Positions 3,833 through 62,500 of a stretch of 64,000 nucleotides of DNA are shown one piece after another. Origin of the DNA: Adineta vaga (taxonomy: Eukaryota > Animalia > Rotifera); the NCBI GenBank assembly GCA_021613535.1, contig CP075495.1, positions 2,170,001-2,234,000 on the forward strand, in the 5' to 3' direction. Each line of letters starts with the position of its first letter. The stretch's first letter is position 1. The notes under the pieces are model-generated. The model saw only the letters and a program-made list of their open reading frames with translations, was not told the DNA's origin and searched no databases. The translations under genes and the position numbers were made by a program.

Positions 3833-4452
3833 ATTTTCTTTTTATTCTTTCTTTCGTGCACTTCGTAATCATGTTTTCTTTTCATTGTTATCGAAGAATA
3901 GTACGTTAAATATGAAAGATCTCTTGAGTCTTTACATAGAACATACCGCGTACTTGTCGACCTAAGAGTTAGCATGATCTATTTATTCATCATCATTAAC
4001 TCTTGCACTAGACAACATTCGGAAGAATAATTCGAATATGACTCTTTTTTCTCTTTTTATTATTTGCTTGGTTGCACACAATCCACCCATTTCGTATCCG
4101 TCCGTTTTGTTTCTTGTCTTTCCTTTTTTTTTTGCATTTCTTCGTTTCTTTCACAACAACATATATTTCTTTTCTCTTTACCGGCAGTCAGTCTGTCTAC
4201 TAGTCAATGAGCGTGTTCGTCATGAAAAGAAAAAAGAATATCATTCTTTACGCTCACACTGTAGGTTTTTTAAGGAGAAAGAGTGAAAAAACGGGAGAAT
4301 AAAGGGATAAAAAGTCGAATAAGAAAAAAACTAACGCATTGCTGTTGTTATTGCAACTGACAATCTAACTACCGGTTTACATGCTTTCATCGATGGGGTA
4401 TGCTATTTATGAAAACGAATAATTAATCATACAATCGTCTTTGACTAACAAC

Positions 4453-7119
4453 ATGACTACTGTTTATCAAGATGTATGTTGATTTCTGGGTACATTTGAG
4501 GTTAATGAATAATATATGTTTAACTAATAATCGAATGATCATATTCTTGGGAAAACGATCATTGTTTAAGTTATTTCAAGTAAGATAAATTGAGAATAAT
4601 TTCATAACTATCGGTAAATTGTTTCGATACGTGTTTTCTTTTTCTTTCATTTTTATCATGTAATAAGTAGCGAAATATGTTTTTCTTTGCAGATATATTC
4701 GTCTTGATAGGAAATTAAAAAAATGTACCTTTCGACTAATGATGAAGTACGTGATGTCGATATTGATGATAATCCCCAAGCACAGCAAACAAATATGACA
4801 CCTGCAACATTAAATGTAAGTAGTTGTTTTTAATTTTCCATGGAATTAATCTAAGAATATTCCATGTATTTTCTTTTTAGATGTCACCATCACCATCTCC
4901 ATGTTGTTCAACATTACTGGTCATTGATGATAATTCAAATTCTAATGACTCAACTGTAATTACAAATGACATTCCAATAAATATACCGTCACCAACTGCT
5001 CAAACAACTCATGTTCAAAGAACATCTTCTCCTCCGTTAGTGAGCGCGGGTAATTTGACCTTTAAATGCAATCTTTTTGTACTTAATAACCAGAAAATTC
5101 TTCTCTAAGATACAACAAATGACACACCTGAACAACAACGCCGTCGAAATTCATCCATTGCTAAATTACTCGGTGGTCAACCATTAAATAATCAACAATA
5201 TGAAGGTGAAATATATATTTTTTGTTCATCTATTTCTTCAAGTCGATTTGTGTTGTTATTTTTTTTAGAAATCAATCAACAAATTCTTGATAATCGATCA
5301 GCTCAAAATGTACCTAATAATAGTGATAATAAAACCGACGGTGAAATACAAAGATCACGAAGTTCTATTGCAAGAACATTATTAATGAATACAGGTATGA
5401 GATAAAAACTTCTCCATAGCTTAGTAATTTTTAATTTAAATTTAAATTTAGAACAAAATCAAAATACAACGACAAATCTAAATAAAGCTCGACCAACATC
5501 ACCAGGATTTTCCAAAGATTTTGAATATTTAATACGGCGAGAACTTGATATTGAACATGCACCGTCAACACTTCAGCGAGATAGTAAAATTATTGTCATG
5601 TGTCTTGATAATTTCATGTCATTTTGTTTTAAAAATAGGCTCAAAACCAAGTGTTTTTCAGAATCTCAGCAGTATTCGTAATTCACCTGTTGAACCACAT
5701 TCACCAACAAATTCAAAATTAAAACGAAAAAGGTTTTTTTATCTACTTGTATGAATTTTTTATTTAGAATTCTTTCTTCTCTTTTTTTTTACTAGAGCAC
5801 TACCTAAGCAAACAATTCCGGTACCAACGACAACAAAAACTTCGAATAATCCTCCATTTAGTATTTCTGAACCATTCGAATTAGATTCATCTGGTCCTTC
5901 GCTTGCTCCACCCATGAATCCCACAAATCATCATCGTTCACATCATCATCAGAATGAGTTATTTCATTTTAATGATATGCCTCGTCATCAGCGTCGTCTA
6001 AGTCAACCACCATCACTAGTACAACAACAACAATATTCACTACCGATGAATAATTCCAATTTATATAATTATCAAAAAACAAATATCCCATTTTATGCAC
6101 AATTTAAAACTCATCATGACCGTTCATCTACAACACCATCTTCACCATTTAACTATGGTCGTTATCCTCGAACACCTGAACTAACATTACCAACACCTAT
6201 TTCGCCTTTATCAATGCATGCACCGTCACCTCCTGTTATATTACATCAAAGCATTGGAGCACCGTCTCGTAAAACTAAGGTAAATATTTGATGAAAGAAA
6301 AGAAAACCATATTTTTCTTCTTCAACTAAATATATCTTAAATTAATACAAGAGAAAAAAAGAGAAGAGTAGAAGAAAATTGTATCATAGACAAGACTTAA
6401 AAATAGTCTTTGTCATCATGAAATATGAAATTTCTATATAAATTCATGAAAAAGATATTTTTCTCGTTGAAAACTGCACTTTTGTTTAAAACTTAAATAT
6501 TTATTCAAGTACTATGAAGAATAGATCCATTTAAACGTTGCAAGAAACAACACTATTATCATGTCATGATTATACTTACAGTAAAGAACAGAATTAGTTT
6601 AAATAAGAATTAAAATATCAATTTCTCGTACTTACAAAGTACTAAGTCTATTTATTAGATATATATTTTGTATTGATACAAAAGTTTCATAAATTACATA
6701 CTTGAATTCTTTGAAGAAATATGAATTTCCATATTATTATTCGATTGTATATGACAATTTACTATGTTTTATATAAATATAAATAAACCGATTTGAATTC
6801 AGTTCATTGAACTGGAAAACATCTTCGCGGTTAAATCAAAACTAATAATAATATGTTTTTTTTTATAAACATTGATAAATTTCAAACGATTTCTACTTCT
6901 TCTTTTCCTTTCGTTTAGACAATATCTAATCGACCAGATATTTTTGATATTCCAATGCAACGATCGTCTTCAAATACATCATATCAATCGAATGCTTCTT
7001 TATCATCCACATCATCATCATCATCATCATCCTCTACAACATCGGAATATTGTGCACCATTAAAAAAGCGTTTGCTTCAATCGTATAAGAATGAGCAACG
7101 GCCTTCATCTTCCTCGTGA
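4453..7119 (+). CDS. Uncharacterised S/P/Q-rich, probably disordered nuclear protein, about 9 exons
   Basis: Exons (approx.) 4453-4473, 4711-4815, 4881-5049, 5110-5205, 5269-5394, 5452-5583, 5639-5732, 5796-6279 and 6919-7119 join in frame via GT-AG introns. Ends EYCAPLKKRLLQSYKNEQRPSSSS*. Confidence 0.75.
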
Positions 7120-7394
7120 TTATTTCATAGTTTTTGTTTTGTCGTTTTTAAACTACCAGGAAGACGTAAATCTCATTCGAATAATCAATCGAAAGATTGG
7201 CGAGAAAGAGAAAATTTCTTGATATGTATTTTTGTCTTAATCTTTGTTTTTGTTTAATGTATATACTCATTTGGATTTCAAATGTCTTAAATATAGACGA
7301 GATTATACATACAAAAGAAAATATAGTGTCTTTCTATCACACATTATTCACAAATTTAGAATATATATATATTTCATTGACAGTCACCGTCGTT

Positions 7395-9388
7395 TTATTG
7401 AATTGAGGAATTAGATTCAGATTGTTTACGAATTCGTCTACGTTGATTAGTTGATCGTTTAGAAGTCTTCTAGAAAAGAAATATTTTATTGCAATTTGAA
7501 AAATGAGTATATTTTAAAACATACTTTAGTATTTGTTCGTTTGGGTTTATCAGTGGATTGAGCTTTTATCAATTGAAAATATCGTTGACGACATTTTACA
7601 GCTGATCGATTTGGTAAGTGATTAGCGGCTAATATTGCCCAACAAATAGGCAATGTTTGATTGCTTTGTTGAAGTAAAATAGCATCTTCTTCTGGTGTAA
7701 ATGAACTTTTTTCTACATCAGGATTAAGATATGTCCAAACATGAGTTGTTTCACGTATACAACGATCACCGAGTAAATAAGCCGCATGTGATACACAAAA
7801 ACGATAATCTTTTACTACTGAACAACGATGTTTATACATTGATAAAAGATATTCTTTTTCAGGTTTTGTAAAACGTCTAAAAACAAAAAACAAACTATAA
7901 ATCGACTTATTCTTGACATAAATATTATTCATCTCGGTACATGCTAGTCGATGAATGTACTTCAAATAAAAGTTGACAGTTTTAGTCTTCAATTGTAAAG
8001 AAATTACATTCGATAGACTTATTAAAAAATGTAAATATGTTTTAATCATGCACATAAAAAAAAATCTTCGTTGACTATCATAATTCACTTCGAATAGAGT
8101 GATGTCTTATTAATTTAAATACATTTAATAGATAATAGAGGATTAATTTGAATAAAATCCATGACATTCTTCTAATAGAGTGCAAGAAAGGAAATATAAT
8201 TTGATGAATTATAAAATTTATAATGAGTTTTTTTTCTAGATTTTCACATGAATTAATGTACTTATAATTAAATATATATATACATATTTTTAATAGAACT
8301 TTATCTTTAAGCACATACATTGAATATATATATCAATTCTTAATTTCCGTTTGAAGATATATGTAATCAAAATAAGCATTTTAGTGCAACTTTCTTTTTC
8401 CGGGCAAAATTTTCTCGACTTACACACATGAGTTTCGTAGAAATGTTATTATTTCAATCGCAATCTATATCTTACCGTTTTGCATGTAATTTATTTGCAT
8501 TTGTCATATATCGTCGTGCACACATAAATGCTGATTTTTTCTTCTTCTAAAAAAATATAATACTTAGACTTGTTTGATTCTCTAGTTCATTGTTTTAAGA
8601 TGATTTACTTGAAGTAATTCATGTTGAGCAATTTCATTCCATTTACCATCACCATGTTGTTGAACTAATTGATTTAAAACTTTATCTTCTTCATCTGTCC
8701 ATGAACTATTGATACCATATTGACATCGATGAATCCAAATACGTTTTAAAGAATATTCATCAAAATATTTAAAACCACCTTTACTTCGCATTCGTGTTGT
8801 AATTAATTTCCAATCAATTTGATCAATTAAAATATCTTTTGAATTTCCACTTAACTCATATAATCGATTGACATCAATAGTTTTTATCATTGCTTTAACT
8901 TCATAGACTTTCTTTCTTAGATCTTCTTTTCTTCGTTCATTTTTACTTTGTCGTTCTTCTTCATTATACAATTCAAGTTCAAGCCAATTTAATACTATTG
9001 TATGCATATTTTCACCAACTAATGGATAAAGTATACGAAAAAATTTTTCATTTAAAAATTGATCATGTCGCCATTGACATATTGTTACTGATGATGGTGT
9101 TAATGATCGATCAGGAAATACTGTAGCATCAAAATCATCTTCATTAACATTATATGAGGGAACTTTGACAGGCGTTGATGTATTAAAATAGATTTCGTTT
9201 TCTTCAATATTATCATTTAATAATAATAATGCTCGTTGATAACAATTATTGAATGCCGATGTTAAAATAGGTGTGTTCTTGGATGATGATGATGATGCAA
9301 GTAAATCATAGGGGTTAATATCATCATGAATTGTATAATTATTTGAAGGACTGTTCGTACTAAATATAGAAGAAACTGTTGAAGTCAT
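7395..9388 (-). CDS. SNAPC4: Myb-repeat protein, SNAPC4/SNAP190-like (4 exons)
   Basis: IDWKLI...WTDEEDKVL...HGDGKWNEIA...SAFMCARRY...YLLGDR...WTYLNPDVEKSSFTPEEDAILL...LPNRSAVKCRQRY is collinear with the SNAPC4 Myb repeats. Introns near 8608-8547, 8475-7877 and 7523-7470. Confidence 0.7.
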
Positions 9389-38010: not shown

Positions 38011-38970
38011 CTATAATTTGTGATAATAGATAAGTTCACCTGCTTCGCCTGGTGCTGATTGTTCACTTGGAATGAAAAGCGTAACAATTAATATACGTTC
38101 ACCTTTCCATGTACTAATTGTGAATGTTGGATTTGCAAATGCTTGACTACCTCCATCTGTAACAATCGATACTTGATCAGCATTACCTGTCTGAGGATCA
38201 AATACAAATGTACGCCAAGTACCAAAATCATGCGACTTATACTGTCCTTCGATAGTTGTGAATGCATAACCATCGAAATCAGAAAGTGAATCTCGATCGC
38301 CAATATTACCTTGTACACCATAATGAAGTAATGCATTATCAACATTAGGTTGTTTTCGAATTTGAACCCATATATTGAAATTTTTCAATGTTGCTCGAGC
38401 TTGACGATCAACAACACAATTATCATAAAAATGAAAACCAACATCGATATTACTCAATGTTGGTTGACCATAGATATTCGGTGTACCTTCTGCACAACGA
38501 GATAATGTACGTGGAACAGAGTAATTTTTTGACGATATCCCAGATTGTAAATCAAGCCAAGTTGAATAAAAAGAAAATTGTATATGATTATTTGGTTCTT
38601 GTTCCCATGCAATGATATAACCTTGTGGTTGATCAATTGGTACAGCAATCGTTGGTTGAGAACCAAAATAAGCTAATTCACGAAGCCATGTCCAAGTGAA
38701 AAGATCATCAGATACAGCTAAATTAACTCTTGGTATATTGTTAATATAAGTATGATAGACACCAATAAATTGTTCAGTATCCGTTCGTTTGATAATCTTT
38801 ACACAATCCATTGTATTTCCAAGATGATCACGTGAAGCATACCGACGTCCATTAGCACCACGTACATCAGCTATCAACGATACAAGCTTATGTCGGGCAT
38901 CATCCGATGGTGTTTGTGCGTAAGCAACATACGCAATACAGCCTACCAATACAAAGATTAATGTCCACAT
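38011..38970 (-). CDS. Intronless secreted protein resembling a bacterial (actinobacterial-type) hypothetical family; HGT candidate
   Basis: 319-aa ORF with a signal peptide. Motifs MDCVKII, GVYHT, SDDLFTW (Asp-box-like), SQPTI, AEGTPNIY, GNIGDRD, AFANPT, GEAGELIYY. The family assignment is from recall. Confidence 0.75.
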   Translation of the reverse strand: MWTLIFVLVGCIAYVAYAQTPSDDARHKLVSLIADVRGANGRRYASRDHLGNTMDCVKIIKRTDTEQFIGVYHTYINNIPRVNLAVSDDLFTWTWLRELAYFGSQPTIAVPIDQPQGYIIAWEQEPNNHIQFSFYSTWLDLQSGISSKNYSVPRTLSRCAEGTPNIYGQPTLSNIDVGFHFYDNCVVDRQARATLKNFNIWVQIRKQPNVDNALLHYGVQGNIGDRDSLSDFDGYAFTTIEGQYKSHDFGTWRTFVFDPQTGNADQVSIVTDGGSQAFANPTFTISTWKGERILIVTLFIPSEQSAPGEAGELIYYHKL

Positions 38971-39287
38971 ACTGAATGCGTTTATCAGACGAACGATACA
39001 TTAGTAGATATATGTAAAGAAACGAATAACAGCTGAAATGTTTTCTCACACCTAATATTTGCACTCGAACGACTTGAAATCGAAAAACAAATTGAAACAT
39101 TTGATGAATCAGAAACGAGATTTTAAAATTATTTGATAATGATAAATGAAAAATGTTTAATCAAATTTTTCTTTTCTCAAAAGAATATAAATAATCGAAG
39201 ACAAAAACCATATTTTATAAAGTGCAAGGAAAGAAGAAATAAAAATAATTATGACGCAGAGAAAAACTCGCTATAGAGTGAAATGAA

Positions 39288-41235
39288 TTAAACTGAAGAT
39301 GGATTATTATTAGTACGTTGTAAAAGTAGCTGCCAAGCATGTTCAACTTGTTTTTGAGTAACACTTTCAGCCCAATAAGTACAAAGAAGAACATTAGCAT
39401 ATGGAAATCGATCTTGATTAGACATTTGAGCATTTAAACGACGTTTTGCTTCTTCAGACGGCAGATGATCTCGTTCGATGACACGTCGAATAGCCTATAA
39501 ACATATTTTCAAATAAACAACAGACCAATATATTATAGATCGATTACTTCTTTTGGAGGAATTGATGCAATCCATATTTCATTTACTGCAACAGTCCATT
39601 TGGCTTCAATTAATACAGCTGCATCGAGTACAATGATATGTTTACCTAATAGAATTAATTTGAAATTTTTATTTTAAATATAAATTTTTTGTATACTACC
39701 TTGTTGGAAGAAATTTTCAATACGTTCTTGTGCTAGGTTTAATATTGCTGGCCAAACAATATCGGTTAATTTCCTCAATTCATTAGGCGCTTGAAAGACT
39801 TTTTTACCGAGTATTTTTCGATCGATTGAACGATCAATAGGATTAATAATATCTTCACCGAATGTTTCAATAACTTTTCTATAGGCATCAGTATCTACTT
39901 TATACGTTTCATGACCTAGTTTATCACAGTCAACAATAGCAGCACCAAGTTTCTCCATGCGACGAGCGATACTTGATTTTCCTGAACCTATGCCACCAGT
40001 AAGACCAATTATATACGGACGATTTGGTTCGTTTGCTTTCTAGAATACAAAATGAATAAGAAGACATTTAACATTACGAATAAATAATATACTAGTGGTG
40101 ATTTAAGAAGAATACTAAGCATTTGTCGTCGAAATGTTGTAGAACTTAATTTATTATCTCCATCTTGATTATCATCATTAGCTGGTACCATAGGTACAAT
40201 ATGAACTGATAATTGAGAGAGACCATTCTCTGCTCTTTCTTTATTCACTTGTAAAGCACCTTGTTTAGTTTCATCCGTAACAATAATACACTAAATCAAC
40301 ATATTACATTCATTACAAGAGAAGAAAAATCTTACATTTAAATCGGGCATAGTCGCAGATGGTCCACAGGGATCTTCAATTGGTTCACAATGAACTTGAA
40401 GACTAGGCCGAATTAAATCAACAAATGAACGAACATTTGATATACGATCAGCAACTGGTTCGATCACTTCTCCTAACAACTGTACAAATAACTTTATATT
40501 TGTAACTAACAGACAATTGTATATAACATACTTTATTCTGTATCATAACACCATCAGTAATACCAACAACAATCTTCTCATCACAAAGTAAAGCACTTTC
40601 AGTGAGTAATAATTTGTGTCCATTATGTAATCTATCAAATGTACCTGAATACAAAAGGCAAAAACAATCAATTTGATCTTCATCAAAATGAACTTACCGC
40701 CTAGCACTCCTCGATTATATTGACTTGTAGATTTATCACTAAACAAGTCATGATCAAATGAAGATAGATTATCTCCTGATTGATCATCTTTCGTATCTTT
40801 TTCATCAATTGTACGAAGTTCAAAATCTTGATCTAATTGATAGAAATGATCTCGACAGTAGTTATATAATCCTGGTGATGGTGAACAATCAGCGAAAACG
40901 ACTTGGCATAGACGAGGTAATCGTAATGGATTCGATGATTTGATGACAGAATCAACATTATGAAGTAGAATATCAACGGAAGGATTCTTTGTTGCTGGTA
41001 ATTGTTTGTAAATTGCATGTAACATAGGACGTATACGTTGTTTTTGTTGTTCCGAATCGACGTTTTTTTCTGACGTTGTTGTTGATAATTGAGCATTCGG
41101 ATTTTGAACAATAATATAAAGATTTCGTTCAACATATGGAATGACTGCAGATAGAATCGATGGAATACGTGAACGAATTGGATTGGTTATCAACAGAAGA
41201 GCCGTTTGAAATCGTCGAATATTTTTATCCGTCAT
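39288..41235 (-). CDS. COASY: Bifunctional CoA synthase (PPAT + dephospho-CoA kinase), 7 exons
   Basis: GVLGG|TFDRLHNGHK, KLSSTTFR, IIGLTGGIGSGKSS, DCDKLGH, LDAAVLIEA. The first ATG is at 41235; the ORF-track start at 41253 is TTG. Confidence 0.95.
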
Positions 41236-41583
41236 AATGAAATGTCTATGCAATCAACAACAATGAATCAATCGAATAAATATTCTCAAATCAAGAAAAT
41301 AATACTATGGTCTAACTCCACAATATTATCTAAAATAAAAGTACTTTTTCAATATCTGTCATTATCTCATCTCATGAATTCAAACATCGATCAATCTAAA
41401 TGGGTTATCTTTTTTTTCTATTTTTATTTATTTTTATTTCAAAAGACAAGACAACATCATCTATTGCACATAAAGATCAAAATATTGGTGAGAAGAAAAA
41501 AACTCTAAAGGTATGTATGTTTGATCGAAATGATAAATATAAATCGAAGAATAAAAAGGAATGCAATCTAATATGAATGTTAT

Positions 41584-42317
41584 CTATTCCAGTGATGTTA
41601 ATGTTGTAAGTTGTTTTAAAACTTTAATTTGACTTGTTTCTCGAATTTCACCTGCAAGAAACATTTCATCAACGACTGAATAAACCTAGAAAGAGAAATC
41701 ATCATCTAATTGCATGAAAATGATAATAAAAAAAAACGTAAGTCTTACTTTATAAAAGTTGAAGACTAAATCTAATTCGCAGACATTATGAAAAAATCTT
41801 TGAATAAAAAGAAAAAGAAAGAAATTTTTCAATCGAGACATTTTTAATCTATTTTACTCATTGAGAACTTCGACAAAGTTATGAATGGCTTCCAGATAAG
41901 CTAAATTATTATCATTAACATCCACACAAATGCAAAAGTATAAGCCAGCATAACGACGATAGACTATTTTAAAATTACGAAACTAAACGAAAAAATACTA
42001 TCGATCAATTTCATAAATGTACACACAATCATACTTCGACAAAACTAAAAACGAAGAAAACAAGTTTTTTTTAGTTTTTGCTAAATAAAGAAATGTCTCT
42101 TTTTCTAACTAACTTACTTTGTATGTTTTGCATCTCGAACAGTAACTAAAGCATGAACTTCTTCAATTAATTTTTGTTTTTCATCATCATGAAAGTTCAT
42201 AAACCTATAAGAAAAAATAAATGGTGAAAATCTTTTCAAAAAAAAAACCTTTCTACTATACCATTTAGCTAGACGAGTTTTTCCAGCACGATTCTGAATA
42301 AGAATAAATCGAATCAT
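41584..42317 (-). CDS. AP2S1: AP-2 complex sigma subunit, 6 coding exons including a 10-nt microexon
   Basis: [19 protein letters not shown]...[26 protein letters not shown]...[15 protein letters not shown]...[11 protein letters not shown]. Confidence 0.97.
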
Positions 42318-42351
42318 AATTGATCTGAAAATACAATGAAAAAATATCGAA

Positions 42352-44651
42352 TTATTTTTCAAGTTTCATTGTAAAACAAACAAATAAACATTTGATTACA
42401 AATCCTACAAGTTGAAATAAAAATCTCGGTGAAAAAATCTTCCATAACATTAAATGTCGTCGAAGAAGAAAGACACTCAATGATGTCATTAATAATTTCA
42501 CACAATCGACAATTAAGATAAGTTTTAGAAAACGTTTCTGAGATTTTTTATCAAGATTCTTTCGAATCAATATGACATTTAATATCTGACCAGAAAACGT
42601 TTCAATTAGAACAAATATTCCACGAAGAACTAATGAATTGATAATTAATGAAAGATAAATATTTAATGGTGAATTTAATGTTGGAAATGCTGCTGTCCAA
42701 CGTATTTGAGAAATCACAGGTTGATGGCCAGTTGCATAAAAGAAATAATCCGATAATAATGAAAATAATAATGGAATCGATGAATCCGTATTCTTCAAAA
42801 GAATTTTATAGAGAGAATATTGTAGAAATATCACAAATGAAAATCGATAACCAACAACAAAGATTAGAATCGAATAAATTAATGTATCAAAGTAAGATGG
42901 TTTATAAAGAATAAAACCAAATTGAATAAGAAGACTTAGATAAAATATTGATAATGTATGAGGAATATTGAACCAATAAGCAACGATAGTTATATAGGAA
43001 AGATATGAATAATTCGATGTAAAGTAGAGAATAATTAACCAAACAATTGCGGATAGAAATGGAAGAATAGAATCGAAAGTATCTGAAGATTTTGATAGAA
43101 GCCAAATTGGATCAATACAATATGGTTGTTGTTCTTCGCGACAAATTAAAAATGCTCGAGATACAAATAAAAGAAATGAGAGAAGACATTTTTCATGTAA
43201 ATTTCTTTTGGTTAACAATATTATTGTTTGTATTAAGAAATAAAGACACATTGCTTCATTAATAATGAAACTATTCGAAAATGATATTGCAAAATACATA
43301 GATGTAAGTATAAGATAAAAGATTAGCTTTTGATAATCTTTTGTTATTTGAAAAAAGATGAATAATAAGATCAGTGATGAAATTAACATGATAAATAATC
43401 CATTAAGAATTCGTGAAATATTAAATGTTGACCATTGATGACGAAAATGTCTTTGTAATTGATGTTTAAATTCATGAAATAGATTTTCAATCATTGTCAG
43501 ATTTCTTTCATTGTTCGATTTGAGAAATATTGTATGAAGATGAGCTCGTAAATCTTGAATATCATCAGATAATGGTAATGTTGAAGAGATTTCTTTTAAA
43601 TATGTATCCATTTGTTGAAAATTTAATTTCATAGCATGATAACGTTGTTCAATTGGAAGAAGATCAGTAATAATCATACCGAGATTAGAAAATGGTATTA
43701 ATATATGAAGAAACCATGCAAGTGTAGGAACAAGATCAATTTGTGAAACTGTTTGTTCTTTCAAATATGTTAATGGAAAATAATTGACTTTTGTTGTATA
43801 TAAAAACATGGCTGTTTCAATTTCATTTAATTCATCACCACCATGATCACCTTGTTGAGTCATACCATGATCACCAATAACCATAAGAAGAGACGGAGAA
43901 TTTAATTGATTTAATACAATTGTTAAATTGCGTATCACATTATCCATTTGATTTAATTTACGTTTCATTTCAATATGTAATGGACCATATCGATGACCAC
44001 AATGATCGCACCGAGAAAATGTGCAATTAGAAATGAAATTTCATCATTCTGATGAGTAGTATTATCAATAACTTGCCATAAATGTTCAAGAATACCATTA
44101 TCAACTGTATCTAAATCATGAACATCAAATGATGGATAAACATGTAAATGTTTAAATGGAATATTTGGATAGAGTGCTAACCATGTATCATCACCTAATA
44201 AGGAAATATTTCGTTGATAAATACTATTATTCAATTGATTTAAAAGATTATCTTCTTCAATTTCATATCCAATAAAATTATAGGATATATCAATAAATGT
44301 TGGTAATGTACCAGTAGTTAAAGCTTTTAAACGTTGAAGTGTTGTTGTTGGTGGATCAGCAAGTAATTTTAATAGAATAGATTGTTGAGGTTGATTTGTA
44401 AGTAATTCTTGAATAAATGGCATTTGTTTTTGATAATTATTTTCAATTGAATTATTTGTTGGTTTAATGAAATCATAACGAAGTGCATCGATAACAATGA
44501 AAATAACATGTTTGAATTCAATTGGTACAGTTGATGGAATTGTACCAATGGAATTTTGTAAAATAACACGACGTGTTAAGAGAAATCCATTGAGAAAAAA
44601 AGCAAGACCTACTATATAAATAGTAATAAGAGATAAAAATGTATAATTCAT
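42352..44651 (-). CDS. PIGO: GPI ethanolamine phosphate transferase 3, intronless; 1-nt deletion near 44008
   Basis: [48 protein letters not shown][V][14 protein letters not shown]...[28 protein letters not shown]. Confidence 0.93.
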
Positions 44652-44670
44652 ATCTAAAATAGAAAATAGA

Positions 44671-45536
44671 CTAGAATAGAATATAATGTTTGAGATTACA
44701 TCGAAATGATGTATAATTTCTTTCTAATTCAAATAGATAATCAATATTAAAATCAATTGTACCATTGAGTTCAAGAATTCGAACATTGTTTGTTAAAGAA
44801 AAGATCAATAATAAACGATTGAGTTCAATATTTTCAATATGAAGAATAAGTGAACGAAGAGATTCACGCCAGATAAATTATCAATATCTTTATCCATGCA
44901 TTCTCGATTTTGATCATTAATATTTGCAGATAAATAACGTAATTCTGGTAGTTGAGACATCAAAACAATCAAATCACTTGAAAAACATTGATTATTCATA
45001 ATAAATCTTGTAATTTTACTTGAATAATATTGATCTTGAATAAAATATATATTAGTATGAAAATGACATTCAATCGATCGAAGATCTGATTGTTGTTGAA
45101 AGAGAATTTGAAATATATCATTTAAATGTTTTTCATTTTGAATATAATTTGTATCAATTTTTATTGATTTTAACTTGGAATATTTCAATATTTGTTTTAA
45201 TTCAATTAATTTAACATCACACAATCGAATTGATTGTAAATTTGTGAATACAAATGACTGAAGAATTATCTGTAAATGATTGTCTTCATCGGATATTGAT
45301 AAATAACGAATATAATGACTAATTTGTGGAAGAATTTGTTTTTTATAGAGTAAAAATTGTTCGGAATTCAAGGAAATCATATTGGCTTGAAAACAAATAT
45401 GTCGATCAACAAGTAAACAATTCAATCGTTGATTTAAATCAAAAAATCCACGAAAAAGATCATAAACATCCAAATAATCAAATATTTCCAAGAATAAATC
45501 ATTTGACAATTCGATAAATGACGAAATATATTTCAT
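44671..45536 (-). CDS. F-box/LRR-like protein; apparent frameshift near 44870, with the continuation ending at 44671
   Basis: F-box FIELSNDLFLEIFDYL...GFFDLNQRLN, then LRR-like repeats. The -1 frame continues ESLRSLILHIENIELNRLLLIFSLTNNVRILELNG...LKHYILF*. Confidence 0.75.
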
Positions 45537-45821
45537 CTAAAATTCAATTAAAAAAAAGAAACATTATATAAACAACAAATTACATCATCATCATCATCAC
45601 TGAATACGTAAACAACACTATGAGAATATCACATGATGCGCAGAAGAAAAGAAAAAAATACAAATTAAACATGAAAAAGAGAAATTCGAGATCGACTATC
45701 GAATAACGAAAACAAATCCATATCTGAATATTGAGCGGAATTGAACCATTAACATAACTAGTCATTATTTATGGCGTTTAACTTGTTTAGTAACCTAAAA
45801 TATACAAAGAAAATTGAAGAT

Positions 45822-47222
45822 TTAATTGTCAAGTAAATGATTATTTACTCGTGAATTGGATTTTTCAACAACTAATTCAATAATATTTTCATCTTTTTCA
45901 AATAAATTTCGATTCAATTGAACAATTTGATTTCTATTAGCATTCTTCGAACAACGTCGCATTTCAGCAACAATTTTCAATGCACATGCACGATATACAT
46001 GATGAACATCACGTAAATGTCTTGGCATATCTAAACGTGAAATAATCGATGAACATGGCGCTTTCATAATATATTTTGGTTGACAATCAAATGGATTTTT
46101 CGAATCTTGATTAAATGGACAAGCAATATGAAAATTTTTATTATATAATATATCTTCTGAATTGAAGAGTACTGTTAAAATGGGATCACGTTGTTTTAAA
46201 ACAGCTTTACAAACTTTGTATGCACTACGAGCTGTCATATGATGAAAACTTTGTAAATGATTGTAAAGACAACTTGGTTTTCCTTCACATAAACGAATAT
46301 TATGAATTGGAAGAATACCAAATAGACCAACACGTGTTATTGGACATGCTCCACGAAACATTGTTACAGATTGATTTAAATTTGATGATGAAGATAATCG
46401 ACGATTTGAACGTTGATGTTGTTCACCATTTTCCTAAAGAATAATCTTTCATCAAAAGAAAGAAATAAATCATTTCAAATGTTCTTACCGAATCACCTTC
46501 ATCCATATCACTAAAATTCATATCACTTCGTTCTCCTTCTTCTGCTGATAAACTATTTTTCGAAACAAACTCAAACATAAATATGAATATTTTCAAATTT
46601 CTTATTACTTACTCATCCGATTTGTTATCCTTATTATCTATTGACATACTTCGACTATTTGATACTAAATCGATAATAATAAGAAAAGATATGTATATGT
46701 ATCTGACTTACAAGAAGTTGGAATGATATGATTATGATTAAAATTATCATTATCATTAAATTCGTTTGGTTCAAGTTTAATATTTGTTGGTACATCGGAA
46801 TTAGAATAAACACGTTCACGTTGTTGTTCACGTTCGATAGCTACATCTAATTTATCTAAATATGTTTGAAATTGGTTGACAGTTGTTTGCGAGTCCAATA
46901 TAGATGTTCCTTCTATTTGTAACTGAAAATGATCACGTCGTCGTTGTTCATATGTTCGTTGAATTTCCGTACATGCTATTTCAATATCACGTTTTTCTTG
47001 TTCATTTAATTTTGTTTCATCAATAAGTCGATTATAAAGGCAAATTCGTTGTTGAATTCGTCGACGTAATTCTTTCGGTGCATCATTTTTATCTTTCTCA
47101 TATAATCGATGATGTTCTTGTAAATGTTCAAAACATACATAACGTTGACAATGTTTAACACATAAAAATGTATCCGTACTTGAACAAGTTGATTCACTAC
47201 ATACGACGACATCGGATGCCAT
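45822..47222 (-). CDS. Uncharacterised protein with Cys/His N-terminus, coiled coil and two CP...HL..H repeats (4 exons)
   Basis: CSESTC...CVKHCQRYVCFEHLQEH; GACPIT...LYNHLQSFHH and IACPFN...MPRHLRDVHH. Three frame-preserving introns. Confidence 0.75.
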
Positions 47223-48148
47223 CTAAAATGAAATTTTAACAAAAAATTAAATTCTATTCGAAGAACCTTGCTTATAACATGTATCGATGTCAAAGCAAAG
47301 CAAAGCAAAGATCACACAGGCTTCATCATTCCTTCTTTCTTTTTTTTCTTCTTCAATAAATGTTTTCAAATGGAAAATAATCTAACCAATATACAAATGG
47401 ATTAATGAAGGACATTAACAAGATGTCGCTTTTGTTCAATAAACTTGAGAATTTGATCTTTTTATATGAAAAAGGTATTAGTGTATAAATATGATTTCGA
47501 TCTATTTGATGACAAAATGAATCAAGATTTACCGTTGTAGAAAATATTCATTATTCCTATATAAGTTCACATGACAATCTCTTCAATATGAATATATCAA
47601 TTTTATGTTTGATATAATTCAAGTATCTTTATGTCTGATGTCTAAATCGTATTTGTCAATATATAGTTGCATCTGTCATTATAAATTTACCAGTTCCTCG
47701 AACGATTTGATTGTAAATTTTTCTTTTCATGCGAGATAAAAGAACTTCGTAAGATGCTTTCAATTTCCGTTTATAGTAAAGTCAAAGAATGAAAGAATAA
47801 ATATAAGAGCATTTGAAATTCTTAATGGATAGAATGATAAATATATAATATAAGTAGACGCAAGAAACAAACTTAGTATATTCTACTCGTATTAACAATT
47901 TAGAAAAGTGAGGAATTTTTCTAATGTATAAAAATAAATCCTTTCAGTTTAATACTTTTCGATGTATTAAATGGTAATCGCTCATGCACATTTTCGCAAA
48001 AATGGTTTATTATTTTTTCTTCAACGTTCTGTTTGTATAATTAGACGAATCAATAAATATTCCTGTAAGAAAAAAAAAGAACGAAGAGAAGGCCATTTAT
48101 TTTTTCGGTCACACTTTTTCACTGTATTTTCTTTTGCTTATTCTCATA

Positions 48149-56575: not shown

Positions 56576-59500
56576 CTAAAAATCATCCATATCATCACTT
56601 GTTTTCTTATTGATCTTTTTTCTTCGATCTTTTCTTGCATTTTCAATTGCTTTCATTCGTTTCTTCTTTCCTAAACCTAAACGTTTCGTTTGTTTGACAC
56701 GTTTCTTTCGATAAATAACTTCCGGTTGATTAATAGCTAAAACAGCTAATTTTTGTTTACGTTCTAAACGTTTCATTCGTCGTTGTTTGGCAACATCAGC
56801 ATAAATACTTGTAATTAAATGAATATCATAATGACGTTTGAACACATCGAATACATCTTGTGCAAGAGTTTTTAATGATAAATTTCCAGTTGTTTCATCA
56901 CGTTCAATTTCACGTTCAAGAACAGTTAGAAATGATTTCAAATGTAATGTTAATTGTTCTGAAAAATCCAGAGCAAGTGCAGCCATCCATTTGAGAATAG
57001 ATGAACGACGTGTGATTTCATTTGGATATTTTGTTGATTCAAATGTTGTTAAACGACAACAACGTCGAAGAACTAAATCAAACTGATCGGAAGTAGAGAG
57101 AATGAGAAGTTTCGATAGATAAATCAGATTTTTTGTTATTTGTAAACAAAATTCATCGGTTAGATTCGACGGTTTCAATTGAGAACAAGCAGCAAGACAT
57201 AAACGTTGAATTTTGATTAAAGGTGAATTTGATATATCAAATGTAGTGACATAATGAACGAATAAAGGTTCATTATCAAGATTTGATTTCTTCAAACGTT
57301 TACGATTTGGACCATCATCAGTCGAACTAAAAAACAAATAAAACAAACGTTTATATTGAACATTTCCAATAAGAATCATAATACCTAATATTTGTATCAT
57401 TTTGTGAAATAAATTTTTGTAAATGTTGTACAAGATCTTCAGGTTTATTTAAATCAAAGAGTAGACCAAAAAATTGTGCTGATAAAAGTCGAATCCATAT
57501 ATGAGGATGTAATAAACATTTCTCATCAATTAATTTCATTAAATCTAACCATTTCGATCTTAATTGTATCATTTGTAATGAATTTGAACAGAATTTTATC
57601 ACATAAATTAATACATTAATCAAATGATAAATATATTGATCATTGAATTTTTCTTGTTCATCATTTTCATTGAAATCTATAGCATGAAATTCTCGTTGAA
57701 TGAAATCGAATATATCAATTAAATATTGATCGAATTGTTCATGTTCAATTTCGATAAATAAAAGAAATAATTGTAATGCTAAACAACGATGTTCAATTTT
57801 ATCATTCATCCAACTACAAACGATATTTTTCAAAATATCCGTACGATGTTGTTCATCAATTTTTTCTAATAATAATTTTAAATTCATTTGAAATGTTTTC
57901 TTACATTCATTATGCGTTTCATTATAATAATGACATGCTAAAGGAAGAAAGAAATAACCGGCATAATCATTTAAACGTTGTTTTGTTAAATCTTGAAATA
58001 GATTATTAAGAAATACGAGAACAGATAATCGACCATTGAAATCTTCATAATCAAGTTGAAGAAGAAAAAAATCTAAATATGATTTTAATTTTGCTTTTGT
58101 ATGTTCATAAGAGAAGAAATAGATATGAAATAGATCACGACATGTTGTTCGAATATGATCATAAGGTGATTGAACAATCAAAAAGATCAAACGAGATCGA
58201 AGAAGATTATCTAATTGAATTCGAAGAGTTTTATTATTAGAAATAATGGCAACTGAATGACGCATAATTGAACGAAGGAGAAGAAATGCACTTGATTGTC
58301 GATGTATATTCAATAGATCGGATTCAATATAGGTAAATAAACATTGATATTCATCAGAACTTAACGAAACTTTATCAATAATAGAACGTTGAACAAATGA
58401 ACCAAGAATTTTATATGAAAGAGTCAATAAATCATTCATATCAGTTGAACCAGCTACTGAAGAATACATTTTAAGTAGATCAAATACCTAAAACACGAAG
58501 AGAAATATTCATGTCGAAAGCTTTTCTACTCAGTTCTTCATATGATCGAAGGCGAGAGATCGAATTAAAACTTACTTTTTTATATAAATTTGTAATTCGT
58601 TGTTGATTTAATGATGGTAATGAATATTCTAATAGAGATGAAAGATTTCTCAATGCAGCAACGATAACATCTAAATAAGGTGAATTTAAACATATTTCAA
58701 TATGAAGTATAAATGGATCAATCATTGCTAAGAATGTTTGATCGTCTGTTTTAAATTTTTTAATTAATTTATGTAGTAAATTCAATGTCCATGATGTTAA
58801 ACAATGTAAATTCGTTTTCTTCACATGTTTTATAGCTTGAGCAACACGAGCATAACCACGTTTAGGTTCCAATGGAACTAAATGATATTTATTTCGTTCT
58901 TCAATAGCTGTACTTAACATTGAATTATTCGATGGATTAATTGGTTGATCATTTGGAAGATTTTCTTCAGTTTTTGTTAATAAATGATAAACAAAAATGA
59001 ATAAACTTTCCGTAGTTAAATGTGTATTATTAACTAAACCGGTTTGAAAACGTTGTAAACATTTTTCACATTTCGATATTTGTCTTGAATCATGATTGGT
59101 TGTTAATTGTTGTCGTAATGGTTCGATACATGTTAATAATTCTTCATTTGAATGTATTAAACGACCAAGTATTTCCATAACATTTGCTGTTTTATTTGTT
59201 TTCGCTTCGGGAATATTCGATGGTTTATATGATGAATTTTCATGTTCATTTGCTTTAGATGATTCAGTTTTTTCTTGATTAAAAAAATCATTAATAAATA
59301 AATTTGTTATGATTTTAATGGTTGAATCAATATTAAAATCAACCGTTAATGATGATATATGAATAAGTATTGTATGAATTGTATGTAGAAGAACAAAATG
59401 TTGATAACCACGTTGTAAACCAGTAATTAATTCTTCGAGAATAAATTTCAAATAACGTTTGCCAAGAATAGTTATACATTTACAAAGACAATCTCGTGCT

Positions 59501-62500
59501 TGATCACGAATTGAATATAAACGTGAACGAAGTAAAGTAATTAAATGAAGAAGAATAGTTGAAATATGTTGTTCAATAAAATTCGATGGAAAAACAACGA
59601 TTAATTTCATTGCAATTAATGAACATGTGATTGTTAGAAGAACAGCTTGTTGACGTTGATCATCAATTGTCGATGTTTTTGTTGATATACCATTGGTTGT
59701 TAAACTATCGATGGAAAATGAATTTTGACTTAAAAGATTCAATATCATTGGTAATAAACGTTGTTGAATTGTTTTACGAATACGGTCATCTAGCAAAGGA
59801 AAAGAAAATACAATGAATTTCTTTTTCATCTATGTTTATTACTTTCAGATTGATTTTCATTTGTATCTAATTGAAAATGAAATGCATCAATAATAGCTGA
59901 AACTGTTTTTGTTAAACAACGTTTTTGTATTGAATTCAATGTTCGTTTTGTTGTTATTAATTGTCGAAAATATGAAATAAATAATTGATTATATTTCATC
60001 CATGGTAATATTTGACAAAATGTTGTTAAACATTGAAAAACAATCTCATCATTTGTTATATCATGTCCATTTTCAATTAAATTATCATTGATAAATGAAC
60101 AAATAATTGGTAACAGATAATTTGTTATTGTTGTTAAACGAAATGGTTTATCTTCATGAAAAGATTTCAAACGTTTTAATGCACGTAATCGTCGATGTGT
60201 TTGAACATGTGTTATATTTTGAAAGAAATCTAATTCAACATCAATATGATTACGTAAACGTTTTAAATCATTTAAATCATCATTTTCATTATTAAGATCA
60301 ACAATAATTGCTAAATGACGAAGAAATTCATGACGAATATTTGTCGATATATTTGATTGTTTCAAAATTGTACGAATTTCTGTAAGAAAATATGTTTGAT
60401 ATAATGAATTTTGTTTAAGAAATAAATGAATACATTGTGATGCATATTCTCGAAGTGAAAGATCAGTAATTGAATAATGTAATTCATATAAACAATGATA
60501 AAATAAACATAAATATTCATCTTGATCTTTATTCATATCTTCAATATTTGATAATTGTTTTGTTAAATCTTTATAACTATTTAATCGACGTTCATAATCA
60601 GGTTCATCGATTTGTTCATTATTCCAAGAATTTAATTCAATCAATTGTTTTAAATACCAAATTGTACTAGAATTGAAGAAAAAAAACCGGATTATTTCAA
60701 TGAATTGATGATAAATTTACCTTGTTTTTGTTGTTGTTGAAGATTGATTGATAAAGATTTGAATCAGTTGAATCAGTTCAATTCTTTGATCACGTTGAAT
60801 TATTTTACCAAAAAGAATTGCTAATGATGAAAGATATTTTTCAATTGGATTAGAAAGATTTGATATTAAGTTTTGTAAAACTTTTAAGATGGAAAGATTT
60901 AAATCTTGTCCAGATGTTTTCATTGAAAATTTCTTTTTCTTTTTCGAAAGAATATTTTGACGAAGTAAACGAACAAAAATTGAACATAATTGTTCGATTT
61001 TATCTAATTTTAATTGTTTACTACTAAGAATAAGAAGAATATCAAATTCTTTTCCTGATAATGCAATAGAACTATTCGATTCAATCATTGAATTCGATAC
61101 ATTAGTTAAATATGTTAATAATTGATCATGATATGGTATAATTAATGAATCATTTGCTAAAATAAAGAAAAGAATTCAAATCTATCGAAATCAACAAAAT
61201 ACATACGATCAATTTGTAAAAGATTCCAAATAAATTCAATAATCAATTGTTTATTATCATTTGTAATCTTTTCATTTAATAATCCCATTGAACATTTCAT
61301 TAAATCTTGAGCATCTTTTCGATCATTTATAATTGTTTGTCGTAAATAGGGTGTACTACTCCAAATGACAGCTAATTTTAATATATGAATAATATCTTCA
61401 CGTTGTTTAGTTTTATTTAATAAATCATTGAGATAATTCTCTCGTATACAACATAACCATACGGAATCGATAAGATCCTTAGTGAATATTTCATTTTCAT
61501 CATTATCAAATAATTCAAAAAGTGTTTGTAAACCTTTGTATGACATTGATCGAAGACGTTTTAATGTAATTCGAAGTTTTTTCGTTTGAAAATCATCATT
61601 ATCTTTAGTATTACCAAGATAATCAACAAATTTAATTGTTAAAATATAAAATTTCATTATATAATGCATTTGTTTATGAAGATAAACACCTAATTTAGTA
61701 ATGAATGTTTTCAATAATGATAAAGAATGTTGAATATATTTAATAAATGTTTCATATGAATTTAAATGAATATCTTCTGATTTCAATGAAATTTTCTTTT
61801 CATATATATTCAACCATTGATTATCATTTGAAGAAAATAATTCTTCAGCAAAAGGTTCTAATAATAATTGAATAAAATATCGAAAATGTATTTCATAGAC
61901 ACCATTCGAAGCAAATGTAATTAAAAATTGAAATAAATATTTACGATTTAATTCAAAATAATCTTTTCGTCCACGTGTTGTTGAACCTAGAAAAAGAATC
62001 AAACTATTGATGACATGATTTGTTGATTAGAAATCATACCTAATGAACGTTTAGTATTCAATTTACTAAAGATAATACGTATTAAAATGAATGCATATTG
62101 ATTTTTTAATTGATCGGAAAGATTTTGTTCGAGAAGAACACCTTGAATTAATTCATGAAAAGCTTTTCGACATGAACTTGGATTAAATAACGGTAGAATT
62201 TCTTGTGAATGTTTAAGAAAATCTGATTGAATAATTGATTCTGGCATTTGATAACATGTTAATAGACAATGATAAGCAGATTGTTGAATAGAATTATCTG
62301 TTGATAGAAGTAAACGAATGTAGAATTGATAGAGACGATATGGTTCAAACCATTGTTTATAATGATGAAATTGTTTGAGAAGATTTAAAATCGTTTCTAA
62401 AGTTTTAATAGAAAATTTTCGAGATAATCGTTTCGATGAATTCGTTTGAATAATATATGATAATTTTGATTGACCAAATAGACCCAATGCTAATAAATGA

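Follow-up and report, generated by a model that had tools for sequence, protein, structure and literature searches.

The window analysed here, a stretch of 64,000 nt of the Adineta vaga genome (contig CP075495.1), carries six genes on its minus strand in the order gene 1, F-box-like gene, PIGO, AP2S1, COASY and gene 6, flanked by a divergent plus-strand gene starting at ~47971 and a convergent gene ending at 37690. This bears out the six co-directional genes of an earlier note on this DNA, in which each was given a splice acceptor abutting its ATG. Its assignments of PIGO, AP2S1, COASY and a bacterial-type gene 6 could be confirmed as well, the F-box gene being recognisable by a weak match only. 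Protein searches used single ORFs or exons, and exons were joined in local scripts only, for the placement of stop codons. RNA contigs come from two studies; X1, X2 and X5 are taken as RNA runs because GT..AG introns are skipped there and never in X9, the DNA run.

Gene 1 (45537..47222, minus strand) encodes a 413-aa Cys/His-rich orphan, for which a Pfam search gave nothing above cut-off. From RNA joints and translation, its exons were placed at 46712-47222, 46613-46664, 46488-46552, 45847-46432 and 45537-45792, with a predicted 5′ end at 47222; four GT..AG joints are seen in contigs of X1, X2 and X5 and none in X9. Since the 3′ intron 45793-45846 is removed in RNA, the stop codon moves to 45767-45765 and the gap to the F-box ATG amounts to 228 nt, not the 285 nt reported before, and is filled entirely by the 3′ UTR of gene 1. 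The remaining stop-to-ATG gaps of 19, 34, 348 and 317 nt were correct. The acceptor abutting the gene 1 ATG is kept in the orthologous contig L024, and by-eye alignment with this contig (~590-690) revealed a conserved non-coding block at 47331..47430 (minus strand), of which ~100 nt are alignable, 110-210 nt upstream of gene 1 within the 750-nt divergent intergenic region; it may represent the promoter of the unit. Another block at 45585..45636 (minus strand), almost unchanged between the window, L024 and L025, lies within the gene 1 3′ UTR, with the F-box acceptor ~50-100 nt downstream, and, from its position and conservation, could be a 3′ UTR element, a branch-point region or an internal promoter.

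The F-box-like gene (44671..45536, minus strand, ~288 aa) is broken in the reference, which lacks one T after 44867, into pieces translating to 223 and 64 aa. The T insertion behind 44867 is found in all four runs, DNA run X9 included, so the frame-corrected reading proposed earlier holds and the break is a one-base reference error. An intact 288-aa orthologue in L025 yields a weak F-box match with an E of 0.042, below the Pfam cut-off. PIGO suffers from the same type of error, one A missing at 44007/44008 and inserted in X1, X2 and X9. A pseudogene reading of the two genes is ruled out, since both are in frame again in the reads; with real genes split by two assembly indels, gene models are easily mis-called here.

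At junction 1, the AG at 45537..45538 (minus strand) is both the poly(A) point of gene 1 and the spliced-leader acceptor of the F-box gene. The gene 1 contigs of X1, X2 and X5 all stop at 45536, X5 adding 15 non-genomic A, and the upstream poly(A) thus starts at the downstream acceptor AG. From the other side, X5 record 18 aligned with the F-box gene to 45538 and continued with 9 loose letters, the reverse complement of CTTACCAAG, which is the 3′ end of the rotifer leader. Together with the shared AG, 11 nt of leader are present on the F-box message, in line with the trans-splicing predicted at 45536. Polyadenylation of gene 1 and leader addition to the F-box message occur at one AG, with no intercistronic DNA. 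Spliced-leader trans-splicing has been described in bdelloids (Pouchkina-Stantcheva and Tunnacliffe 2005). SL RNA genes in which a GT donor follows the 23-nt leader are present in the genome, with the consensus GCTTATTACAACTTACCAAGAG/GTAAAT and with leader, donor and downstream RNA body conserved; the leader-plus-donor word has 54 genome copies versus 2 in the control.

Downstream of the F-box gene, the 19-nt spacer of junction 2 (44652..44670, minus strand) consists of a pyrimidine tract, an AG (44655-44654) and AT, followed directly by the PIGO ATG. A PIGO RNA contig (X1 record 3) stops precisely at 44655 and an F-box contig (X5 record 15) at 44664, and the junction is bridged only by a DNA contig (X9 record 24), an arrangement that we count in favour of an operon. 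PIGO itself (GPI ethanolamine-phosphate transferase 3; 42352..44651, minus strand) is intron-less and matches Pfam PF19316 and PF01663; its orthologues measure 756-780 aa. The 34-nt spacer of junction 3 (42318..42351, minus strand) holds an acceptor AG (42326-42325) 7 nt before the ATG of AP2S1. Two RNA contigs, X1 record 2 and X5 record 14, extend from 43417 and 43360, respectively, through this spacer and AP2S1 exon 1 into the spliced joint 42260>42202, joining at least 1.1 kb of PIGO to AP2S1 with intron 1 already removed. Junction-spanning RNA, which the operon prediction had implied, was therefore found in two studies, as De Bruijn contigs that differ from single molecules and could stem from overlapping transcripts. 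Among the loose ends listed, the leader is seen on the F-box contig only; the contigs of PIGO and COASY terminate on an AG, and AP2S1 has no loose end among those listed from RNA contigs.

AP2S1 (41584..42317, minus strand) encodes 142 aa with a Clat_adaptor_s match, its CDS following from joints in X2 and X5 and from translation. Its exons lie approximately at 42260-42317, 42118-42202, 42035-42044, 41858-41982, 41747-41797 and 41584-41683, that at 42035-42044 being a 10-nt microexon. A 3′ UTR element ending in AATAAA (41431..41483, minus strand) is kept in the window, L021, L022, L027 and L035, and AP2S1 contigs end between ~41444 and 41529. The COASY CDS (39288..41235, minus strand) was modelled stop-free with 7 predicted exons and 545 aa and has a CoaE match; its orthologues combine CTP_transf_like and CoaE. 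The COASY acceptor claimed at 41245 was dropped, as the COASY contig (X1 record 1, 1838 nt) is colinear with the genome past this position up to 41331, plus 5 further letters, and a better acceptor, conserved together with the following UTR in A. steineri L021, lies 86 nt upstream of 41245. This AG (41330..41331, minus strand) is most likely the one in use, placing the first exon base at 41329 after ~100 nt from the canonical AP2S1 poly(A) signal (~60 nt in L035) and leaving a 94-nt 5′ UTR without upstream ATG. The AP2S1-COASY spacer varies from 45 to 650 nt across taxa, with 450-650 nt in A. steineri, Rotaria and L027, and RNA contigs of X1 and X5 do not cover 41332-41443. COASY is possibly a fifth, more loosely attached cistron of the unit. 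Gene 6 (38011..38970, minus strand), according to sequence matches a 319-aa secreted-type protein of bacterial origin, shares 58% identity with Chitinophaga and Niastella proteins and has orthologues across bdelloids, with nothing above cut-off in a Pfam search. A CAG does lie 1 nt before its ATG, as had been noted, with a weak tract of 8/15 pyrimidines, and it is absent from three orthologous loci. In other taxa gene 6 lies 0.7-2.7 kb from COASY, and A. steineri has an extra paralogue. Judged from these sequence features, it is probably a transcription unit of its own with its own promoter.

The distances of 0, 0, 2, 7, 10 and 1 nt between YAG and ATG were reproduced for the six genes. Of all ATGs in the window, 18-20% have a bare YAG in the 10 nt before them, so its occurrence at all six genes by chance has a probability of 4-7e-5. 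If at least 10/15 pyrimidines are demanded, the background drops to ~5% of window ATGs and 4 of the 6 genes retain an acceptor (P ~9e-5); the pyrimidine tract is poor at 41245 and at 38971. When the 60 nt upstream of the acceptors were scanned for 12 hexamer variants, neither junction 1, examined in 3 taxa, nor junction 2, examined in 7, showed an AATAAA-like signal; AP2S1, which closes the core, carries AATAAA in every taxon examined. A search for a common promoter motif ahead of the acceptors yielded AT-rich 6-mers only; the word ATG..TGA(G/T)A precedes the F-box gene and certain COASY orthologues without being general.

Synteny in other bdelloids speaks for an operon of the first four genes, tiny spacers with acceptors recurring in up to eight DNA contigs. 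The spacer between the F-box gene and PIGO measures 19-30 nt with acceptor in six other contigs (L023-L027, L035), and that between PIGO and AP2S1 19-71 nt with acceptor in eight, one GC-richer species whose PIGO identity is only 60% included. All relatives' contigs examined (L021-L027, L033-L037) are DNA or devoid of leader and speak to synteny only. A search of the 8 kb upstream in A. steineri and Rotaria detected neither gene 1 nor the F-box gene nor the N-terminal third of PIGO. In A. vaga itself, an AP2S1 ohnologue on contig 5 has a conventional 350-nt spacer and no PIGO ohnologue was found in the genome; this comparison is uninformative on co-transcription.

We propose that gene 1, the F-box gene, PIGO and AP2S1 form a spacer-less spliced-leader operon of the Ciona type in a bdelloid rotifer, a reading that we consider probable with some reserve. 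RNA polymerase II would initiate in the divergent intergenic region, upstream of 47222, and transcribe all four genes in one pass. As the contigs show, the F-box message acquires the 23-nt rotifer leader at the AG abutting its ATG, and gene 1 is polyadenylated directly after that AG. The next two junctions, composed of pyrimidine tract and AG only, would work like junction 1, and the RNA contigs spanning PIGO and AP2S1 would represent unprocessed precursor. Since the upstream message contains both the branch point and the AG, a single precursor would probably give rise, at each junction, to either the upstream or the downstream mRNA, but not to both. Of the polycistronic unit resolved by spliced leaders that the earlier note put forward, the part comprising the first four genes is thus supported by the leader at 45536, the gene 1 poly(A) at the same AG and the spanning contigs. 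Extension to six genes is not supported, given the COASY acceptor elsewhere behind spacers of up to 650 nt and the gene 6 acceptor that is not conserved. It counts against the operon reading that the evidence is split by junction, with leader, poly(A) and spanning RNA coming together at no single one.

Alternatively, the genes could be overlapping independent units packed into a compact genome, with promoters located within the preceding gene or its 3′ UTR and with trans-splicing trimming the outrons. Contig depths of neighbours differ by an order of magnitude (~2-13 for the F-box gene, 55-110 for AP2S1), which leaves room for internal promoters; the block at 45585-45636 could be one of them, the AP2S1 ohnologue works behind its 350-nt spacer, and contigs cannot prove single molecules. 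However, stop-to-acceptor spacers of 17-27 nt would confine such promoters to coding sequence, and gene 1 poly(A) begins at the exact bond of F-box trans-splicing, so that transcription must cross this boundary for both products, an argument taken from PMC1488885. Given that RNA spanning PIGO and AP2S1 appears in two studies and that up to eight further bdelloid contigs preserve the junctions, we judge independent units to be rather unlikely, yet the most serious competitor of the four-gene operon.

A single unit of all six genes, COASY and the bacterial-type gene 6 included, would agree with their common strand between divergent and convergent neighbours, with a COASY contig ending on an AG acceptor, and with an AP2S1 poly(A) signal about as close to this acceptor as in nematode operons. 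It is rendered improbable by the stretch 41332-41443, devoid of RNA contigs in X1 and X5, by the long AP2S1-COASY spacers of other taxa and by gene 6, with its weak acceptor missing from three orthologues, its distance from COASY and the additional A. steineri paralogue. Hardly any credence is left for a leader exon with donor GTAATT near 45583, cis-spliced to alternative acceptors to give unrelated proteins, as the earlier note had also considered. The GTAATT is present at 45583, but gene 1 contigs of three RNA runs are colinear through it to 45536, where they are polyadenylated, no joint starts nearby, and the letters on the F-box exon match SL RNA genes and not local sequence, which refutes this exon.

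The locus thus displays sequence- and RNA-level signs of a rotifer operon with an unusual Ciona signature. Membership in an operon could restrict changes of gene order in a bdelloid genome otherwise known for rearrangement, and the bacterial-type gene at the cluster end has a bearing on bdelloid biology. A third animal lineage would join those that bear on the question by what mechanism operons lacking spacers are resolved and whether their origin lies in convergence or in common descent. In the literature searched, including that later than PMC7986045 (2021), no report of the sea-squirt operon layout in rotifers was found.

In Ciona, the upstream mRNA ends in AG followed by poly(A), intercistronic DNA is missing, 16 of 18 operons are without AATAAA, and genes inside and outside operons receive the same one leader (Satou et al. 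2006, PMC1488885). As in Ciona intestinalis, unrelated genes on one strand adjoin here without intercistronic DNA, AG-poly(A) coincides with the downstream acceptor, no AATAAA precedes the junction and, as far as contigs can tell, unresolved dicistronic RNA exists. In contrast, the phylum is another one, the 23-nt leader is unrelated, the rotifer acceptor abuts or nearly abuts the ATG, and the evidence consists of assembled contigs instead of full-length cDNA clones, with poly(A) and leader at one junction only. SL1-type operons of C. elegans, as summarised in PMC1488885, share little or no intercistronic sequence, a general leader and probably mutually exclusive processing, but the characterised nematode cases have a canonical AATAAA upstream, which rotifer junctions 1 and 2 lack in the taxa examined. 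The AP2S1-COASY boundary, with canonical AATAAA, ~100 nt and acceptor, resembles the C. elegans SL2-type, from which it differs by its spacer length varying between taxa and the lack of bridging RNA in contigs, whereas junctions 1-3 are too tight for the ~100-nt region after AAUAAA. Oikopleura operons have intercistronic regions of 23-30 nt (PMC1488885), and in chaetognaths, gnathiferan relatives of rotifers, 18% of genes reside in operons (PMC12460157). Short intercistronic regions and mostly housekeeping content are common to these and the present locus, as is apparently the absence of an operon-specific leader (PMC1488885; PMC12460157), although the rotifer processing sites coincide rather than lying 23-30 nt apart. 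It is possible, and we suggest it tentatively, that the layout with an end polyadenylated at the AG is shared by descent with the chaetognath operons.

The six genes lie on the minus strand of contig 2 of a 100.8 Mb genome of six contigs, in a window spanning bases 2,170,001–2,234,000, of approximately 30% G+C and with introns of 50–70 nt, and are flanked by a divergent plus-strand gene (from ~47971) and a convergent gene (ending at 37690). Gene 1, a Cys/His-rich orphan of 413 aa, is followed by an F-box-like gene (~288 aa, with a weak Pfam match at E 0.042), PIGO, AP2S1 (142 aa), COASY (545-aa model) and the bacterial-type gene 6 (38011–38970, 319 aa). The latter has a signal-peptide-like N-terminus, and its closest non-rotifer relatives are Bacteroidota proteins of 58% identity (Chitinophaga, Niastella), which some sources describe as fucose-specific lectin or GH43-like. 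It is found across bdelloids, with a tandem duplicate in A. steineri and ricin-type lectin domains on some Rotaria paralogues. The stop-to-ATG gaps and YAG-to-ATG distances, from which the earlier note had proposed a six-gene operon resolved by spliced-leader (SL) trans-splicing, were reproduced as the DNA reads. A bare YAG within 10 nt upstream is found at 18–20% of all ATGs, giving a chance of ~5e-5 for all six genes, while a YAG with a pyrimidine-rich tract precedes ~5% of ATGs and is seen at four of the six cluster genes; the pattern is therefore unlikely to have arisen by chance. Elsewhere in the window, three long minus-strand ORFs (297, 450 and 373 aa, ~57300–60700) are spaced by -4 and 10 nt and are acceptor-less; they may represent another reference indel or a multi-ORF mobile element.

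Assembled contigs of the sequencing runs X1 and X2 (from one study), X5 (from another) and X9 were aligned over positions 41100–47099, and the following results refer to the contig pieces and loose ends listed. Eight GT..AG introns are skipped by X1, X2 and X5 and never by X9, whose contigs bridge them, so that the former were treated as RNA and the latter as DNA. Relative to the reference, every covering run, X9 included, has one additional T after 44867 and one additional A after 44007/44008. The frameshifts in the F-box gene and PIGO are therefore reference errors and both genes are intact, which also renders the frameshift-corrected 19-nt gap between them, as put forward earlier, real. The two missing bases split each gene into two ORFs in the reference, from which gene callers will mis-model both. 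Since the intron 45793–45846 is removed in RNA, the gene 1 stop resides at 45767–45765, leaving 228 nt of 3' UTR to the F-box ATG. RNA contigs of two runs confirm a 10-nt microexon of AP2S1 (42035–42044); the first AP2S1 intron is absent in L026 and L027, DNA contigs from other bdelloids, and L026 additionally has no intron after the microexon. One X1 contig matches PIGO 3' coding bases 42364–42475 only (112 bases), with more than 255 unrelated letters on each side.

The leader word CTTACCAAGAGGT has at least 54 copies in the genome, compared to 2 for the reversed control, and in aligned copies GCTTATTACAACTTACCAAGAG is conserved and leads into a GTAAAT donor, after which the RNA body is conserved as well; this organization identifies the loci as SL RNA genes. 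They are mainly arranged as head-to-head pairs with leader words 168 bp apart (e.g. C1:1639465–1639645 and many other loci), and are also clustered on contigs 2 and 5.

At the boundary of gene 1 and the F-box gene (junction 1), gene 1 contigs of X1, X2 and X5 all end at 45536, and that of X5 extends past this position with 15 non-genomic A. An X5 contig over the 5' part of the F-box gene aligns to 45538 and continues with nine letters, CTTACCAAG on the minus strand, which together with the AG common to leader and acceptor make up the 3'-terminal 11 nt of the leader; the F-box ATG follows immediately. Leader sequence at the acceptor at 45536, a check the earlier note had proposed, is thus observed. 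The same AG (45538–45537) is therefore the attachment point of both the poly(A) tail of gene 1 and the leader of the F-box mRNA, and intercistronic DNA is absent. Upstream of this acceptor, a block in the gene 1 3' UTR (45585–45636, minus strand) is near-identical in two other species; it may serve as an internal promoter, as a branch-point region or as an element of the UTR itself.

At junction 2, between the F-box gene and PIGO, the X1 PIGO contig terminates exactly on the AG at 44655 and the X5 F-box contig at 44664, and among the contigs listed the 19-nt spacer is crossed by a DNA contig only. At junction 3, single contigs of two runs (X1 record 2 and X5 record 14) each comprise at least 1.1 kb of PIGO, the 34-nt spacer, AP2S1 exon 1 and the spliced joint of exons 1 and 2. 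RNA covering both PIGO and AP2S1 therefore exists in two studies, with a de Bruijn contig not being proof of a single molecule.

Using PIGO homologues, we reached ten bdelloid DNA contigs and found the junctions to be conserved. The order gene 1 > F-box is displayed by L024 and L025, F-box > PIGO by L023–L027 and L035, and PIGO > AP2S1 > COASY > gene 6 by L021 (A. steineri), L022 (Rotaria sp.) and L027 (metagenome). The F-box > PIGO spacer measures 19–30 nt in every contig showing this pair, always ending in T-tract-AG-AT-ATG, while the PIGO > AP2S1 spacer measures 19–71 nt and carries an acceptor in 8/8 contigs, including L035 from a GC-richer species with a PIGO identity of 60%. The ATG-abutting acceptors of gene 1 and the F-box gene are conserved, as is, with L024, a ~100-nt block upstream of gene 1 (47331–47430). 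Twelve poly(A)-signal hexamers were looked for in the 60 nt preceding the acceptor, and all were absent at junction 1 in 3 taxa and at junction 2 in 7 taxa; AP2S1 retains AATAAA in all taxa. In A. steineri (L021, ~7000–8480) and Rotaria sp. (L022, ~3900–7980), a search of up to 8 kb upstream of the PIGO C-terminal part recovered neither gene 1 nor the F-box gene nor the N-terminal third of PIGO, unlike in six other bdelloid contigs.

Downstream of AP2S1 the arrangement changes. AP2S1 contigs stop between ~41444 and 41529, adjoining a ~50-nt 3' UTR element (41431–41483, minus strand) that ends in AATAAA and is nearly invariant from Adineta to Rotaria and the GC-rich L035, in contrast to the surrounding UTR. 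The alignment of a COASY contig of 1838 nt extends to 41331, where it reaches the A of a good acceptor (AG after a T-rich tract), and the contig carries five further letters; the acceptor proposed previously at 41245 lies within its colinear stretch and is therefore not the one used. The COASY acceptor lies ~100 nt beyond the poly(A) signal of AP2S1 here, ~60 nt beyond it in L035 and 450–650 nt beyond it in three other contigs. COASY may belong to the unit as a fifth, more loosely attached cistron. A. steineri, Rotaria and L027 lack the CAG acceptor assigned to gene 6, and there the gene is separated from COASY by 0.7–2.7 kb. The SL-resolved polycistronic unit of the earlier note is supported from gene 1 to AP2S1 by the shared AG at junction 1, the RNA contigs at junction 3 and the conservation of the junctions; gene 6 probably lies outside it.

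Very unequal contig depths, the conserved block within the gene 1 3' UTR and the conventional spacing of the AP2S1 ohnologue on contig 5 all favour the main alternative, in which each gene would be transcribed from its own promoter inside its upstream neighbour. We regard this explanation as rather unlikely: following the argument made for Ciona (PMC1488885), both products at junction 1 need transcription across the boundary, and gene 1 and the F-box gene are therefore not fully separate units. In the operon we favour instead, transcription of the four genes would start in the divergent region that lies upstream of 47222, presumably at a single promoter, the leader would also be added to PIGO and AP2S1 mRNAs, and the F-box gene and PIGO would have their poly(A) sites at the acceptors of their downstream neighbours.

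In the literature searched, no rotifer operon of this layout is described, including in papers that appeared after Wenzel et al. [quoted passage not shown] 2006, PMC1488885). The signature observed here at junction 1 is the one defining Ciona operons and, taken together with the requirement for transcription across the boundary, leads us to consider it reasonably probable that gene 1 > F-box > PIGO > AP2S1 constitutes a Ciona-type SL-resolved operon.
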